From the sequence record OR529409.1: a DNA stretch of 64,000 nucleotides. One strand, given 5' to 3'. Made by a program: the position numbers and the translations under genes. Within the stretch, counting starts at the first letter, position 1, and every line of letters begins with the position of its first letter. Shown one piece after another: positions 52,555 through 59,563 of this stretch. The notes beneath the pieces were generated by a model. That model saw only the letters and a program-made list of their open reading frames with translations, was not told the DNA's origin and made no database searches.

Positions 52555-53049
52555 ATGCTTTTAGACGAATGGGTCGGTGTTTTTAACTCGCTATCCTCGG
52601 ATTTGAAAGGAAGGGATGTAGAGGGTTACATTTACTTGTTTGGAGATATCATTAACGGTTTGTTGTGGGCTGGATTAGTGGGTTGGTCGATATCGTTAGT
52701 GAAGCGACGTAAGAAAAACAAACGAAGAGAAGAGAATGATTATAAGTTAGCGGAATTAATTGAGTCATTCCTTGTCTTTGAAGGCATTACGCCGGATAAG
52801 TATTCCATCCCCAAGTTCCTAATAAAGAATGAGAAAGAACTCCTTATCGCACTAGACTACTTTTTAAGGAAGGACCCGTTGCTGCGTAAGAAGCTGAGAT
52901 TCAAGCGATTAGAAGTTAAATTATCGGAGGATAAGATCAAGATAAGATTTAAGACTATCTTTAGAGCTGGCGTATACGGCGTATCGGCCGATTCCTCAAG
53001 GTTACTAATCTTCTTAGGCCTGTTACTGGAGAAAAATAAAAATGGTTGA
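52555..53049 (+). CDS. Membrane-anchored hypothetical protein
   Basis: TM segment INGLLWAGLVGWSISLV followed by a basic cluster. Confidence 0.65.
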   Translation: MLLDEWVGVFNSLSSDLKGRDVEGYIYLFGDIINGLLWAGLVGWSISLVKRRKKNKRREENDYKLAELIESFLVFEGITPDKYSIPKFLIKNEKELLIALDYFLRKDPLLRKKLRFKRLEVKLSEDKIKIRFKTIFRAGVYGVSADSSRLLIFLGLLLEKNKNG

Positions 53050-53428
53050 ATTATCGTTACCTTCTATCGTTTTTGGAATTGGGTTAGGTGCAGCGTTAAC
53101 TCTTTTTTGGATCAAATTCTTAAAGGGAGTGTTGGAGAAGAAAGAAGCTGAAAGGAAACTTAAAGAGGAAATAGATGAAAAATCTAAGGAGTTGGATTTA
53201 CTGGTGTCTAAATTAAGAAAAGAGGTTCGTAGTCTTGATGAGTTACTTAACCATCCGGACTTCGCCGAACTGTACAGTTTTCTTAAATGTTCGATAATAG
53301 TAAGGTCCGACGCCCTTTTCATTATTTCGCCGTATTGGAGTAATACCAAAGAATGCTTTGAACATATTCCGATTCATTTAAAGCGGGTTGACCGGATCTC
53401 CTCGCGCATTTTAGGCGAACTTATCTAA
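53042..53428 (+). CDS. Membrane-anchored coiled-coil protein
   Basis: N-terminal TM SIVFGIGLGAALTLFWI, then a coiled coil. Confidence 0.65.
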   Translation: MVELSLPSIVFGIGLGAALTLFWIKFLKGVLEKKEAERKLKEEIDEKSKELDLLVSKLRKEVRSLDELLNHPDFAELYSFLKCSIIVRSDALFIISPYWSNTKECFEHIPIHLKRVDRISSRILGELI

Positions 53429-54593: not shown

Positions 54594-54698
54594 ATGGCTA
54601 AATCCAAAATGTCCGACTTTATTGATATTGCCGTGCTGTTCCTGGTAATATCTCTCGTCTTAACCTTTTTCTTTTACGCTATTATTAAATATGGATAA
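54594..54698 (+). CDS. 34-aa single-TM miniprotein (not in the ORF track)
   Basis: MAKSKMSDFIDIAVLFLVISLVLTFFFYAIIKYG; fills the gap and overlaps the next start. Confidence 0.55.
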   Translation: MAKSKMSDFIDIAVLFLVISLVLTFFFYAIIKYG

Positions 54699-55041
54699 AA
54701 CTACTATGTTTGACCTTATTAAGCTTCTCGAGATCTTCCTGGGATTCTTTATTTGTATTCTGCTGATCGTTCTGCTTGTCATAACGACACGTAAGAATAA
54801 ACGACCCCAACTCCCTCCTACGCATGAAACCCTTCGGTACATCATCTCTGGCGCCCTACAGACGGGAGTTTATAATACTCCCGATCTTTATGTCGAACTC
54901 GCCTTAAAACTCTCTAAGGACTACGGAGAGCTCTTAAACGTTAAAATAGAGTACGATCATTTATCGTCGTCTAGTCATAAAACGTTTTATATAAAGGATT
55001 ATACACTTAAACGAGTTTACCCGTTAACCTTTAACGCATAA
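54691..55041 (+). CDS. Membrane-anchored hypothetical protein
   Basis: N-terminal TM IFLGFFICILLIVLLVI followed by RKNKRP. Confidence 0.65.
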   Translation: MDKTTMFDLIKLLEIFLGFFICILLIVLLVITTRKNKRPQLPPTHETLRYIISGALQTGVYNTPDLYVELALKLSKDYGELLNVKIEYDHLSSSSHKTFYIKDYTLKRVYPLTFNA

Positions 55042-55051
55042 AACGTTGATC

Positions 55052-55083
55052 TACTCCTACTCCCGTAATAGGGAGTAGGAGTA
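55052..55083 (+). terminator. Intrinsic terminator
   Basis: TACTCCTACTCCC-GTAATA-GGGAGTAGGAGTA. Confidence 0.8.
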
Positions 55084-55417
55084 CTCTTATGAATTTATTT
55101 TTAGTTAATTAATGTTAAACCTAGGATAGTATAGTATAAATAGCTCTAGCGTAATATATTAGGCCTTCGGCCTAAAGGGCTAGGGTAAGTCAATTCGTTC
55201 GTTTCAGCATCAATCAAGGTATTCGCTACGCTCATACTTTCTTATGCTTACACTCACCCATGCAACCTGGAGAGAAACCCCGACTGAACAAAGTTGTTTA
55301 TTCCTTCTCAGGGGAATAAACAGTTCGTCGGCTAAAGACATAGGATGTTTTATGATCAGTAAAGAAATACGATAATCTAAACTTATTAGTTCAAACACTG
55401 TAATCTAGGAGATAACC

Positions 55418-55534
55418 ATGAATATCATAATACCATTAAAGCTACTCGGAGGGTTACTTATCCTGGGAGTGGGTTTTGGATTACTGGTTTATCTCATTGT
55501 TAAACTCTCCGTTAAAATGGCGTATAAAAAATGA
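55418..55534 (+). CDS. 38-aa single-TM miniprotein (not in the ORF track)
   Basis: RBS AGGAG; MNIIIPLKLLGGLLILGVGFGLLVYLIVKLSVKMAYKK; ATGA overlap with acb1. Confidence 0.7.
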   Translation: MNIIIPLKLLGGLLILGVGFGLLVYLIVKLSVKMAYKK

Positions 55535-55998
55535 GTGAAGAAGAGTTGTCATTAGGTTATATTTCGGTTAAAGTCATTCCCACTCAGGAAGGGATTCTTA
55601 AAGATAAGGTGTTGGATGCAGGTTGTCTTCCGTTAGATGAAGGGACGTACCACGCTACGCTTATTTTTGATATTCATCAAGATGGGGTGATCCCTAACGT
55701 ACCTATGATCCCTGAAAAGATCTTCGAGGGAAAGGTTATTGGAATCAAGGAACTCGGAGAGCGTAAAGGTGATATTATCTCAGCCGTTGTACTCGAACTG
55801 GATTCTCCTGAATTGACAGAAGAACATGATCGGTTAAAACAATGTGGGTATGGACATTCCTATCCGGATTACACCCCCCATATTTCGCTGGCTTACAAGG
55901 TCACAGAAGAGCAAATGGAAGACCTCAAACGACAGTGTGAGTCGCTTATCGGTAAAACGTTCTACTTATCCGGAGAGAGCATCGACTGGATAGATTAA
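55531..55998 (+). CDS. acb1: Anti-CBASS nuclease Acb1 (2H phosphoesterase, T4 gp57B-like)
   Basis: Two HxT/S motifs (YHATL, YTPHISLAY); VVLELDSPEL..EH; HSYPDY; C-terminal Trp lid (DWID). Confidence 0.85.
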   Translation: MSEEELSLGYISVKVIPTQEGILKDKVLDAGCLPLDEGTYHATLIFDIHQDGVIPNVPMIPEKIFEGKVIGIKELGERKGDIISAVVLELDSPELTEEHDRLKQCGYGHSYPDYTPHISLAYKVTEEQMEDLKRQCESLIGKTFYLSGESIDWID

Positions 55999-56011
55999 GA
56001 GGCAAAGGGGT

Positions 56012-56440
56012 ATGTCTGATAAACTTACTATATCGCTTTTTAAGCTTATAAAAAACCATACTGGGATGACGTTAAAGGAAGGTGAATTCTCTTTAACGGG
56101 AGAAAGACCCTTTTGGTTCAGAATACCTCCTTTCTCCCTTAACCCCAGTTCAAGAGAGAGATTGAGAGATCTCTTTCAAGATAACTTTGATGTGACTGTA
56201 GTTGATTATGTTGACGATTACCAGATCATATTCAGCCAAATTGAACCAACAACTTCTCGTCGTATAAAACGCGTCAGGAACATCCTAGATGTGCTAGAAA
56301 GAGAGTACGGTAGAAACTGCCTCAGACCAGAAACCGGTAGAATCTTGAGCGGATATCACTCTACTCATAAAGACAGAATAGAACAGGAAGAACTTGCTTA
56401 TAATAAAAAGATTTTAAATGAAGCGTTACGAAGACGTTAA
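56012..56440 (+). CDS. Hypothetical protein between acb1 and tad2-like
   Basis: 142 aa; RBS GAGG/GGGG. Confidence 0.65.
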   Translation: MSDKLTISLFKLIKNHTGMTLKEGEFSLTGERPFWFRIPPFSLNPSSRERLRDLFQDNFDVTVVDYVDDYQIIFSQIEPTTSRRIKRVRNILDVLEREYGRNCLRPETGRILSGYHSTHKDRIEQEELAYNKKILNEALRRR

Positions 56441-56481
56441 TCTTATGCAATATTTTTAAACTTAAAACGTGGGGTGGGTAA

Positions 56482-56805
56482 ATGACGTACGATGAAGTCG
56501 AGAAATATCTGGAAATGGGAGAAGCTATCTCTAAGGGTAGTTGGAAAGCTAACGAAGCGGTTTATTTAGAGCCGACGACGTTACTTAATCCAGCGCACTA
56601 TCCTGAGTGTTTAAAGGCCGCAGGTATTAACTCCCTTTTGAGAGTCGATCGACATTTAGTGCGTGTTACCGCGAGTAACACTGTTGAGCGTTTTATTCCC
56701 AACATTGTAGAAAGAAAAGAAAACGATTGGTACGTTAAGAGTTATACTTTCGAACAAAATAAAGCATTGCCAGAACACAATCAAACCCAAGAAGAAGCTG
56801 CATAA
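56482..56805 (+). CDS. tad2: Tad2-like (DUF2829) immune-signal sponge
   Basis: MTYDEVEKYLEMGEAISKGSW (M.f.eal..l..G..v.r.gW pattern) and TASNTVERFIPNIVERKENDWYV (ta.n....w.ps..d..a.DW pattern); divergent. Confidence 0.6.
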   Translation: MTYDEVEKYLEMGEAISKGSWKANEAVYLEPTTLLNPAHYPECLKAAGINSLLRVDRHLVRVTASNTVERFIPNIVERKENDWYVKSYTFEQNKALPEHNQTQEEAA

Positions 56806-56824
56806 TAACACCCCCCCCCCTACA

Positions 56825-56943
56825 CTTAGATTTTAACCAGGAGAGGCTTACGCCTCTCCTGGTTTATTTTACTTGTATTCTTTTTTGGATCGATATTATT
56901 TATGTGTAAACCTCAATAACTTTTAGGAATCAACATCATGAAT
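56825..56943 (+). repeat. Terminator-promoter-RBS cassette, copy 1
   Basis: CTTAGATTTTAA, hairpin AACCAGGAGAGGC-TTAC-GCCTCTCCTGGTT, TATTTTACTTGTATTCTTTTT, then TTTAGGA...CATCATGAAT. Confidence 0.85.
56890..56908 (+). promoter_or_regulatory. Putative early promoter TCGATATTATTTATGTGTA
   Basis: 16/19 match to 14402-14420. Confidence 0.55.
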
Positions 56944-57153
56944 GGTCTTTTTGGAACAGGTTGTTTGCTGTTAGGTGCTGCAGTGTATTTCTTCCTGAAG
57001 TACCTAGAACTACGTAAAGATTTTAAAGAGAATAAGATTAAAGATAAGGGCCGGGCGTCTGGGTATAAAAATACCTATTTCTCTTTAACCATTTGTGTTT
57101 TGGGTCTGGGCGTCTTTTTAATGGTTAATGGAACTTTGTTGGAGATCAGATAA
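56938..57153 (+). CDS. Small two-TM membrane protein
   Basis: 71 aa; two hydrophobic segments around a basic loop. Confidence 0.65.
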   Translation: MNGLFGTGCLLLGAAVYFFLKYLELRKDFKENKIKDKGRASGYKNTYFSLTICVLGLGVFLMVNGTLLEIR

Positions 57154-57620
57154 TGGATATCGTTATGTTGACCGACGCAGAAACAGTTTTGGGTGTCGTC
57201 GATGCAGAGGAATACTATCTTCCTACGGGAATTATGCGGCATTGGATACAGATGGCTATCCGAAGAGGGCCGGGGCATTGTAGGGCATTTTGGTTTGAAG
57301 GTGGGATCCTTGTTTTGACCAAAATACCCTTAACGGATAGCAATACCTGGAACGCTTCGATTTGGATTTCTGAAGATTACAGGCGAAAGGGATTGGCTAA
57401 ACGAATAACCGTTTTGGCTTTGGATATGTTCAGACTGGCTAACGCGACTCTACGTTTCCATCCTTGGGATGACCGTAGCGTCGCATTCTTTTCTAATTTG
57501 GTTAACGAGGGATTGTTGACCGGAAAGAATTTTGGGGATATGGGGTCCAGACGTCTTTTATCTTCTGAACTCCTTAAAGACCCTGAGGCTTTTACATCCC
57601 AGCGCACTGAGCGCATTTAA
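57153..57620 (+). CDS. GNAT-family acetyltransferase
   Basis: Motif A IWISEDYRRKGLA; SVAFFSNL-like motif B. Confidence 0.7.
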   Translation: MDIVMLTDAETVLGVVDAEEYYLPTGIMRHWIQMAIRRGPGHCRAFWFEGGILVLTKIPLTDSNTWNASIWISEDYRRKGLAKRITVLALDMFRLANATLRFHPWDDRSVAFFSNLVNEGLLTGKNFGDMGSRRLLSSELLKDPEAFTSQRTERI

Positions 57621-57644
57621 TCTTTCATAGTAAGAGGTAATATA

Positions 57645-58025
57645 ATGGACCGTAACGAATTAGCGATTATTCTTATCGATCAACTTAACAGATTCCTTTA
57701 CCCTAAACTTGATAAAACCAATATGACCAAGTTTAGTTTATTGGGAACGTTAAATCCTGAAGTAGTAGCTACTGAATTCTACAATAAGGAAACCTGTGTG
57801 GGGTCGTCGTACGTGTCCCTGATGCTTAAAGAACACGGTATTGCCGATGACGCTTTCATAAGGGTCAACAAGCAATTGTCGGACTACGGCGACATCTTAA
57901 TATCACACTCCTATAAAGTGCTAGGGGATGGTTTCAATGGTTTCTTTGTGACCGTGACGTTTAATCTGGATTTAACCAAGCTTAACATGCTTAAGTTCGC
58001 TAATGAGCTTGCGCGCTACGAATAA
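57645..58025 (+). CDS. Hypothetical protein
   Basis: 126 aa; RBS GAGGT. Confidence 0.65.
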   Translation: MDRNELAIILIDQLNRFLYPKLDKTNMTKFSLLGTLNPEVVATEFYNKETCVGSSYVSLMLKEHGIADDAFIRVNKQLSDYGDILISHSYKVLGDGFNGFFVTVTFNLDLTKLNMLKFANELARYE

Positions 58026-58040
58026 ATCGTAGGGTCCGCG

Positions 58041-58161
58041 CTTAGATTTTAATCAGGAGAGGTGTCCCTCTCCTGGTTTATTTTACTTGTATTCTTTTTG
58101 GGGCAGGATTATCACGAAGAAACCCGCAAATAAACCTTTAGGAGTTAACGCCATCATGAAT
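58041..58161 (+). repeat. Terminator-promoter-RBS cassette, copy 2
   Basis: Same as copy 1; 33 nt perfectly identical (56853-56885 vs 58067-58099); ends TTTAGGA...CATCATGAAT. Confidence 0.85.
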
Positions 58162-58881
58162 ATCAATAAGCTGCCAGAGAATCATCACGTCATTTCTTCT
58201 ATGGTCAATCCGTTTGACCCTAACGAAGAATTGTTCTTCGTTACCCATCCTCGTGTAAATACTTACTTGGATCTCGATGTTTGGTTCTGTGATATGGGTA
58301 CCGGGGATATGAGAGTTGTCGAGCTCTACGGCAAAGTGTCCGACGCTCGGTTATTTCCCCATATGGAAAAACACGTGTCCGACAACTCGGTTCAGTTTCT
58401 TTATCCGGCCGTCATTCTTCCCATCTCCATGAAAGCACGGGGGTTTAAAAATGACATCTCTTTGGAACTTTTACCCGAATCCCCAGACGATCTCCGTTTA
58501 AATCCATTCTCGGTCAATAGCGATGACCGAACGTATATGATGGGAGACAGTATTCAGGAACGAGCTAACGCCAGTAAAGCTCTTCATCACCCTTCCCCAG
58601 AGGAAATATCTGATGGGGCTAATAAGGAGTACGAGGCGAGGAGAGCAGCTTTGAAAGAACTGCTGGAAAGCGGAGATGAAATTAAAGCCATTCCGAAAAC
58701 CGCTTATCATACTAAAGAGTTTTCAGATGCTTTGGGTACCGCGCTTGTATCAGATCCGCATTTCAGTATTCCTGCCAGTTATAAACATCACCCGGCTTTT
58801 CAAAAACCTAACCCGAAGAAACCTAAACCTAATCGTAACCTGGACACGATCATGGGGTTGTTAGTGAGGACCAAGAAGTGA
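58156..58881 (+). CDS. Hypothetical protein
   Basis: Start reassigned to ATG 58156 using the cassette's RBS. Confidence 0.65.
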   Translation: MNINKLPENHHVISSMVNPFDPNEELFFVTHPRVNTYLDLDVWFCDMGTGDMRVVELYGKVSDARLFPHMEKHVSDNSVQFLYPAVILPISMKARGFKNDISLELLPESPDDLRLNPFSVNSDDRTYMMGDSIQERANASKALHHPSPEEISDGANKEYEARRAALKELLESGDEIKAIPKTAYHTKEFSDALGTALVSDPHFSIPASYKHHPAFQKPNPKKPKPNRNLDTIMGLLVRTKK

Positions 58882-59252
58882 CAGAAACTTATCAGAGTTG
58901 GGTCGCTGAGTTTAAAAAATCCGTCAGCGAGCTCAAAGAAGTCGAATCGGCCGGCTACGGCAAATATCGTTTAGGTGTGCAGGATCCGCCAGGAAAGCCC
59001 TACGTCCTGGTAGAAGTAAAAACTTCTGATTGTGCGTACACGCCCAACTATTCGTTGGATCTTGTGAAAACGATTAAGATTCCAAAACCTAAAGGGTTGA
59101 GGTTATCGGTAGAACGTCGCATTCGATTAGTGGGGTATCTTTTACAAATCGGGGTGTTCGATCTACTCACCCAGGCAGAATGGGGGGTGATCTTTAATGT
59201 CTCTCGTGGATCCATTTGGCATTATAAGAAACAGAACGAGGAATCGCTATGA
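58878..59252 (+). CDS. Hypothetical protein with C-terminal HTH-like motif
   Basis: LTQAEWGVIFNVSRGSIWHY. Confidence 0.6.
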   Translation: MTETYQSWVAEFKKSVSELKEVESAGYGKYRLGVQDPPGKPYVLVEVKTSDCAYTPNYSLDLVKTIKIPKPKGLRLSVERRIRLVGYLLQIGVFDLLTQAEWGVIFNVSRGSIWHYKKQNEESL

Positions 59253-59563
59253 AGATTTATGCGGTCGTTAGTAAGGAAACCGATAATGTGATCGCTCAGT
59301 TTCTCGATCACGGGACGGAGAAAGTCAAGTTCAATGGGATCAAATTGGGGATCTTGGATCAACAGGTTCATCCAGATGAAAGAGAGCTGCTGAAAGTCGT
59401 AGAGGTTTATCTTTCATCTTCAAAGGGAAAGATGGATCAGACGAAACAACTCGATTCCGACACGTTTATTGTTGAGAGCCTCAGTTATTATGAGGAGGTT
59501 GATTTTGTCTATCTATCTCGTAACCCTGAGCGTGACATCGCTCTGTGCACACCAAAGGAATAA
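59249..59563 (+). CDS. Hypothetical protein
   Basis: 104 aa; ATGA-coupled. Confidence 0.6.
   Translation: MKIYAVVSKETDNVIAQFLDHGTEKVKFNGIKLGILDQQVHPDERELLKVVEVYLSSSKGKMDQTKQLDSDTFIVESLSYYEEVDFVYLSRNPERDIALCTPKE

Follow-up and report, generated by a model that had tools for sequence, protein, structure and literature searches.

An Acb1-family enzyme gene and a borderline Tad2-like gene share an operon in the Miamivirus jumbo phage BUCTxx100

Seven consecutive genes at 55418-58025 of jumbo phage BUCTxx100 are all annotated as encoding a 'hypothetical protein' in GenBank record OR529409.1. A sequence-only reading had described them as an anti-defence island, in which Acb1 and a Tad2-like sponge flank uncharacterised genes and a GNAT acetyltransferase. 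Does this locus counteract host immunity, and through which of its genes? We analysed a window comprising the first 64 kb of BUCTxx100, a Miamivirus phage with a genome of 252,190 bp. The seven open reading frames (ORFs) that had been read from the DNA, all on the plus strand, coincide with GenBank coding sequences (CDS). We refer to them as A to G:

55418-55534, plus strand: A, 38 amino acids, basic, one membrane-spanning segment
55531-55998, plus strand: B, 155 amino acids, predicted Acb1-family 2H phosphoesterase, tetrad H41-x-T43 / H117-x-S119
56012-56440, plus strand: C, 142 amino acids, basic (isoelectric point 9.3), hydrophilic, found in this genus only
56482-56805, plus strand: D, 107 amino acids, divergent and borderline DUF2829/Tad2-like protein; domain at approximately residues 1-86, followed by an acidic C-terminal tail
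56938-57153, plus strand: E, 71 amino acids, two hydrophobic segments
57153-57620, plus strand: F, 155 amino acids, divergent GNAT-type acetyltransferase candidate
57645-58025, plus strand: G, 126 amino acids, accessory, with conserved ends and a variable middle

The genes fall into two operons. The first, A-B-C-D, has in our judgement a little better than an even chance of being a counter-defence unit against nucleotide-signalling immunity that pairs an Acb1 nuclease with a putative Tad2-type binder. The Acb1 part of this proposal draws on tested features of the family, the Tad2 part on a borderline domain match. We consider an anti-defence role reasonable in the case of B and plausible in that of D; gene position alone suggests one for C, E, F and G. 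We infer the enzymatic activity of B, the sponge function of D and any defence roles of the other genes. Of the seven proteins, all hypothetical in the GenBank record, just two can in this way be linked to an anti-defence family already known.

Over bases 54600-58900 the window shows 100% identity to Stenotrophomonas phage BUCTxx100 at matching coordinates; its nucleotide identity is 92-97% to Miami, KPN8, phiKp_32 and YC1, which are Klebsiella phages, and to VB_ZK_P1, a Raoultella phage. NCBI taxonomy assigns Miamivirus to the Chimalliviridae, the nucleus-forming jumbo phages, in agreement with the sequence-only reading, which had taken this phage to be a nucleus former. Miami is presented in 10.1101/2023.02.24.529968 as distantly related to RAY, a nucleus-forming phage.

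B can be assigned firmly to the Acb1-family 2H phosphoesterases, with an intact catalytic tetrad, and the acb1 label that it had first been given holds. The assignment follows from a score above the Pfam cut-off (Acb1, PF23474: 51.8 bits against 27, E-value 9.2e-14), from PDB sequence matches that are to Acb1 proteins only (7t26, E-value 2.8e-6; 9q2g; 9q2y) and from an invariant tetrad: its two motifs, H41-A-T43 and H117-I-S119, line up with those of 9q2g and 7t26, and the tetrad is unchanged in 7 orthologues. The HxT/HxT catalytic tetrad of Acb1 is described in PMC9117128. Residues 8-155 of B align with phrog_755 (E-value 4.7e-25), and metagenomic orthologues of B are also marked PF23474. In the Miami annotation (L002 4010-4399) the Acb1 gene begins 26 codons further downstream than in those of BUCTxx100 and KPN8. 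We favour the longer start, because the PHROG alignment reaches back to residue 8 and the stop codon of A overlaps the upstream ATG.

B might instead be a LigT-like RNA 2',3'-cyclic phosphodiesterase or end-healing enzyme belonging to a replication-repair block, in which case the downstream genes would be ordinary jumbo-phage ORFans of the lineage that share no purpose and D would have some other role. Weaker matches of B to the generic 2H models 2_5_RNA_ligase2 (22.2 bits, below the cut-off of 27) and LigT_PEase (14.6 bits, also below its own cut-off) are consistent with this, as is the annotation of B as 'RNA ligase' in Miami and KPN8. However, the Acb1 model scores far above both generic models, the restriction of the PDB matches to Acb1 points in the same direction, and the NCBIfam model for RNA 2',3'-cyclic phosphodiesterases (TIGR02258) gives B 11.4 against a cut-off of 65.7.

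Genomic context bears on the same choice. The locus lies just downstream of a conserved block of DNA ligase, RNase H and AAA-ATPase genes. Of the 191 phage records with an Acb1 homologue, most are from jumbo phages, with Vibrio, Erwinia, Pseudomonas and Aeromonas as hosts. Like B, the homologues in PDCC-1, RisingSun and EL score above the Pfam Acb1 threshold; in these three phages and a metagenomic Miamivirus relative (L010) acb1 sits a few genes downstream of RNase H. BUCTxx100 and EL have in common the gene order DNA ligase, RNase H, Acb1. Because the same ligase/RNase H neighbourhood recurs in distant chimalliviruses, we take acb1 to be an ancestral gene of fixed position across the Chimalliviridae and not a recent island acquisition. 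What survives of the proposed 'island' is that the surrounding region is variable and accessory (see below); the notion of recent clustering does not fit the conserved position of acb1. Hidden Markov models (HMMs) built for C to G and run against six-frame translations near acb1 in PDCC-1, RisingSun and EL found no homologue, a result that does not favour the neighbours of acb1 in BUCTxx100 as strong candidates for counter-defence proteins. An acb1-like gene that keeps its place past RNase H in the absence of these companions is what a housekeeping enzyme would lead one to expect, yet an anti-CBASS role is compatible with a conserved gene at a fixed position, and we regard the housekeeping explanation as quite unlikely.

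In the EL neighbourhood (L015 2500-3738) a gene for a DHH/DHHA1 phosphoesterase (Pfam DHHA1, 32.2 bits) stands between RNase H and the Acb1 homologue. Some enzymes of the DHH/DHHA1 class break down (cyclic) dinucleotides, and two nucleotide-degrading enzymes may adjoin each other in EL.

Returning to the view of B as an Acb1, its family membership and intact HxT/HxS tetrad suggest that it would most likely cleave the 3'-5' bonds of the cyclic di- and trinucleotide signals of CBASS (an antiphage signalling system based on cyclic oligonucleotides) in the cytoplasm, with the consequence that the CBASS effector would never be activated. Acb1 has a compact 2H fold, whose pocket is U-shaped and carries a lid at the C terminus. 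B resembles the known Acb1 proteins (T4 gp57B; Erwinia phage FBB1, PDB 7T26/7T27) in sequence and size, both halves of the tetrad align, and it too is encoded by a large myophage. It differs in that its local match to FBB1 Acb1 extends over 41 residues at low identity, that its second motif is HxS rather than HxT, and that its gene is coupled to one for a 38-amino-acid membrane protein and fixed beside RNase H in nucleus-forming phages. An acb1 gene at a fixed position would mean that phages of the nucleus-forming kind, with their DNA out of reach of nucleases, have nonetheless retained a dedicated gene against signal-based immunity in the cytoplasm.

The arrangement of B with its neighbours is defined by the following non-coding features:

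55052-55083, plus strand: hairpin closing the upstream transcription unit, recognised by reading the sequence, as an inverted self-match and from a terminator annotation in Miami
55084-55417, plus strand: conserved non-coding leader of operon 1, 89-99.7% identity among relatives
56835-56874, plus strand: intrinsic terminator of operon 1, 13-bp stem and T-rich tail; 56835-56864 in the terminator scan
58051-58088, plus strand: second terminator, after G, near-identical to the terminator after D; 58051-58078 in the terminator scan

The terminators at 56835-56864 and 58051-58078, together with the upstream hairpin at 55052-55083, divide the locus into two co-directional operons, A-B-C-D and E-F-G, each of which ends in a strong terminator. 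The terminator after D, correctly placed by the sequence-only reading ahead of a gene for a transmembrane protein, is strong, with a T-run following its 13-bp stem; it is annotated in Miami too and is 92-99% conserved in relatives. The hairpin at 55052-55083 does not appear in the terminator scan, as it is not directly followed by a T-run. In both operons the first gene encodes a small membrane protein and is coupled in translation to the gene that follows: A overlaps B in the sequence ATGA, which confirms the coupled miniprotein that had been noticed before acb1, and E overlaps F in the sequence TAATG. The two hydrophobic segments of E match the transmembrane protein that had been expected before the GNAT gene.

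None of the seven genes is broken. The ratio of nonsynonymous to synonymous substitution rates (dN/dS), calculated by the Nei-Gojobori method over 4-5 related genomes, is 0.17 for A, 0.03 for B, 0.08 for C, 0.12 for D, 0.02 for E, 0.17 for F and 0.13 for G. Values of 0.02-0.17 mean that each of the seven is a genuine gene subject to purifying selection and not a chance ORF. There is no paralogy among the 21 local proteins. The leader at 55084-55417 has no Rfam match at gathering or E-value thresholds and its fold is unremarkable (folding z-score -1.24). Sigma-70-like promoter sites occur at chance-level frequency, and a motif downstream of both terminators was dropped as a promoter candidate, not being enriched in the window.

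D, the last gene of operon 1, encodes what we grade as a borderline case: a divergent DUF2829/Tad2-like protein. It scores 23.4 bits against Pfam PF11195 (DUF2829/Tad2; cut-off 25, E-value 8.5e-5), with the match covering model positions 1-72 of 73. The signal is shared by all 5 proteins of the D cluster (best E-value 8.5e-7), and a precomputed PF11195 mark is found on three of four close relatives; D itself is 100% identical in 5 of 7 phage records. For comparison we used Tad2 of phage SPO1, gp34.65, found by Pfam in the SPO1 genome (accession from 10.1101/2023.05.01.538930), which as a positive control scores 85.8 bits against PF11195. An alignment of the D family matched SPO1 Tad2 in hhalign with P 0.032, and matched nine diverse Tad2 relatives with P 0.0018 and a probability of 14.8%, collinear over 81 columns. 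The D-family HMM gave nothing significant against the first 50 kb of SPO1, a part without tad2.

Tad2 combines a helix at the N terminus with an antiparallel sheet and forms a homotetramer that has two pockets at its interfaces. The main ligand contacts of SPO1 Tad2 (PDB 8SME-8SMG) are W25, N26, W73 and D79. W21 of D aligns with W25, and W73 and D79 are conservatively changed to F71 and E77; N26 is replaced by K, G24 by S, G27 by A and S76 by N in the hhalign alignment, which is of low confidence mid-protein. D is collinear with Tad2 end to end, shares an N-terminal M-x-aromatic-x-E...G...W pattern and a C-terminal D-W, and is likewise small and acidic; it differs from Tad2 in having an additional segment internally and a tail of 21 residues. 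Since the SPO1 Tad2 pocket is only partly kept, it does not predict the ligand of D. Among relatives of Tad2, binding of gcADPR, His-ADPR, cyclic pyrimidines and N7-cADPR has been reported (ADPR, ADP-ribose; 10.1101/2025.08.24.671296), so the altered pocket of D is no argument against a sponge function. Equally, with most of the Tad2-invariant residues lost, neither a sponge function nor a particular ligand can be assumed. The sequence-only reading was right to see a DUF2829/Tad2 signal and went too far in naming a sponge, given that D is a divergent outlier. If it does act as a Tad2-type protein, D would most likely bind and sequester a nucleotide-derived immune signal, and it would widen the sequence range of a family already known to bind several signals.

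Several points weigh against operon 1 being a counter-defence unit. The position of acb1 beside DNA ligase and RNase H, conserved in distant chimalliviruses, fits housekeeping nucleic-acid metabolism too. D falls short of the Pfam cut-off and has a low hhalign probability to the Tad2 relatives. It retains 3 of the 11 columns that are invariant in the nine-sequence Tad2 sample (W21, D82 and W83), and the W-N-G ligand-contact motif of Tad2 reads W-K-A in D. Neither single-sequence nor profile searches brought up a Tad2 among the PDB matches of D. An AlphaFold2 model of D built from a 5-sequence alignment has a mean predicted local distance difference test score (pLDDT) of 46.9 and was unusable; a Foldseek search of the PDB with this low-confidence model returned noise only. 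Lastly, nothing that resembles C, E or G informatively was found in Pfam, PHROGs, NCBIfam, PADLOC, the PDB, an exhaustive protein search or Foldseek.

Anti-defence gene clustering is discussed in 10.1101/2023.05.01.538930. Like known anti-defence clusters (such as the anti-Gabija locus of SPbeta-like phages), the locus would combine two counter-defence families in one operon within a variable region. It differs from such clusters in that its acb1 anchor appears ancestral and fixed in position rather than a mobile accessory gene, and in that no more than two of its seven genes are linked to a known anti-defence family.

How far can the counter-defence reading be extended to the other genes? The sequence-only reading had called the interleaved uncharacterised genes strong candidates for new counter-defence proteins. 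We consider it possible, although unlikely, that at least one of C, F and G is such a protein and works alongside Acb1 and the Tad2-like protein, with possible roles as a new sponge or inhibitor (C), as an enzyme that disables a host immune protein through acetylation (F) and as an allele-variable inhibitor in an arms race (G). The position of C between B and D in one operon, with its constrained sequence, is consistent with this idea, and so is the retention of the C-D-E-F order in the most divergent relative found (L012, approximately 82% amino acid identity). What argues for C, F and G is their adjacency to B and D, and since most jumbo-phage genes are functionally uncharacterised, such a gene beside acb1 is the default expectation; 'strong candidates' was an overstatement. 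NCBIfam and PADLOC scans gave nothing, PDB sequence and profile searches with C, D, F and G returned nothing meaningful, and C, F and G show no similarity to known anti-defence families, PDB entries or viral folds. PHROGs offered weak, function-less matches for the proteins other than B.

The standing of C as a strong candidate suffers from its narrow distribution. A word-index search and an exhaustive search of 1.84e9 representative proteins found no homologue outside Miamivirus-like sequences. A match over 24 residues to a 2522-amino-acid protein in the exhaustive search was treated as spurious. C has no Pfam, NCBIfam, PADLOC or PDB match. It is improbable, in our view, that C founds a new counter-defence family acting on a step of signalling immunity outside the reach of Acb1 and Tad2; if it does, A and E might be functional partners rather than bystanders. 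Every relative has A, at 87-97% amino acid identity, including those in which it is unannotated, and E, with the lowest dN/dS, is more conserved than any other gene here.

G is a second genus-specific gene, and with C makes up a short list beside two recognisable counter-defence genes, neither C nor G having independent support as a candidate. Its 13 relatives are 66-100% identical, with invariant ends and a variable middle. G is missing from one metagenomic relative (L011), where the next gene directly follows F. This presence and absence among relatives, together with the variable core, would suit a new counter-defence protein, an inhibitor with variable alleles engaged in an arms race. However, the high dN of G is accompanied by a high dS (0.88), and positive selection on G was rejected; overall, its divergence points to old alleles or to recombination. 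The AlphaFold2 model of G has a pLDDT of 64.6 overall and of approximately 80 over residues 50-125. Foldseek found no match for this model in the PDB or BFVD (best E-value 0.2; template modelling score at most 0.35 bar one match), another point at which the description of G as a strong candidate does not hold up. A scan of IMG/VR found no relatives of G.

F is a candidate for a divergent GNAT acetyltransferase. It scores 19.6 against Pfam Acetyltransf_1 (PF00583), short of the cut-off of 20.7, and three further GNAT families of Pfam match the same stretch below threshold. Homologues in 300-kb Klebsiella jumbo phages are 26-28% identical in tblastn, and one that is 28% identical to F (E-value 7e-9) passes Acetyltransf_1 with 27.5. 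The GNAT label of the sequence-only reading is thus not earned by F itself at the Pfam cut-off and gains its footing from this homologue; Miami and KPN8 annotate F as a 'putative acyl-CoA N-acyltransferase'. Motif A of GNAT enzymes, which binds acetyl-CoA, has the pattern R/Q-x-x-G-x-G/A. The corresponding region of F contains R77-R-K-G80-L-A82, of which R77, G80, L81 and A82 are invariant in the F-family alignment, the distant homologue included. A PDB profile search with the F family was uninformative, returning just two weak matches, to an XisI-like protein (E-value 0.027) and NAA30 (E-value 0.74). The acetyltransferase gp125 of RisingSun is not related to F.

An acetyltransferase could have a place in counter-defence. 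The anti-CRISPR protein AcrVA5 is an acetyltransferase that disables a host immune protein. PMC13728456 mentions that Cas12a can be inactivated by acetylation. F resembles AcrVA5-type GNATs in being small, phage-encoded and GNAT-like and in lying beside putative counter-defence genes. It differs from them in that no sequence relationship to them was found, and no anti-CRISPR acetyltransferase appeared in PDB sequence or profile searches with F. In vB_kp_MJ359 the F homologue lies two genes before a gene for a Macro-domain protein, a point in favour of F as a new counter-defence protein. The only distant homologues of F have an RNA polymerase subunit gene and a helicase gene as neighbours instead of Acb1 or Tad2, and in vB_kp_MJ359 the homologue follows those two genes; this argues against F as a strong candidate. 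HMMs of C to G run against a six-frame translation around this homologue detected just the homologue itself. The Macro-domain protein (L009 4879-6105; E-value 1.1e-7) is annotated as a 'phosphatase', and the protein encoded between it and the GNAT homologue has a weak match to a predicted nucleotide synthetase (E-value 0.0067).

The operon structure also allows E-F-G to be a module separate from operon 1, either a membrane-associated acetyltransferase with a phage, host-envelope or metabolic target, or a superinfection exclusion system. E-F-G is its own transcription unit bounded by two terminators, E is both coupled to F and under the strongest constraint in the locus, and further small membrane proteins are encoded just upstream (54594-54698 and 54706-55041). 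Nothing specific favours such a module, and what speaks for it is no better than what speaks for a counter-defence role of these genes; we think it unlikely.

The small proteins just upstream of the locus with hydrophobic N-terminal segments are of 34 amino acids (54594-54698), 111 amino acids (54706-55041) and 128 amino acids (53042-53428). Counting A and E, membrane miniproteins are abundant between 53 and 57 kb.

The locus lies in a variable, accessory stretch among near-identical genomes, as seen in the presence or absence of G, in the hypervariable genes H, I and J that follow it and in an insertion sequence (IS) element in one relative. H, I and J (58156-59563) are hypervariable among genomes that are otherwise 93-97% identical: amino acid identity falls to a minimum of 33-65%, saturation has been reached at synonymous sites, and H varies in length from 199 to 336 amino acids. 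They form a recombination or diversification hotspot directly after the locus. The IS element, of the IS200/IS605 type with TnpB, is inserted in phiKp_32 (L003 2305-3441) within the leader of the acb1 operon, the window equivalent of which lies in 55084-55417. A gene of 297 amino acids that lies upstream in BUCTxx100 is absent from the phiKp_32 annotation. Within the leader, BUCTxx100 also has an annotated CDS of 43 amino acids on the minus strand (55210-55341), which the Miami and KPN8 annotations do not contain.

The spacer after G (58026-58155) is a copy of the D-E spacer (56806-56937), comprising the terminator and downstream sequence, of which 22 nucleotides are identical. This copy is found in BUCTxx100 only; the G-H spacer of its relatives is approximately 45 nucleotides long, and the sequence of the second terminator matches the D-E spacer alone in those genomes. 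As a result of the copy, E-F-G is flanked by direct repeats in BUCTxx100 only.

BUCTxx100 was deposited as a phage of Stenotrophomonas maltophilia, yet it is 92-97% identical in nucleotide sequence to Miamivirus phages whose isolation hosts were Klebsiella and Raoultella. This points either to a host range of uncommon breadth for a single phage genus or to a host label in need of checking.

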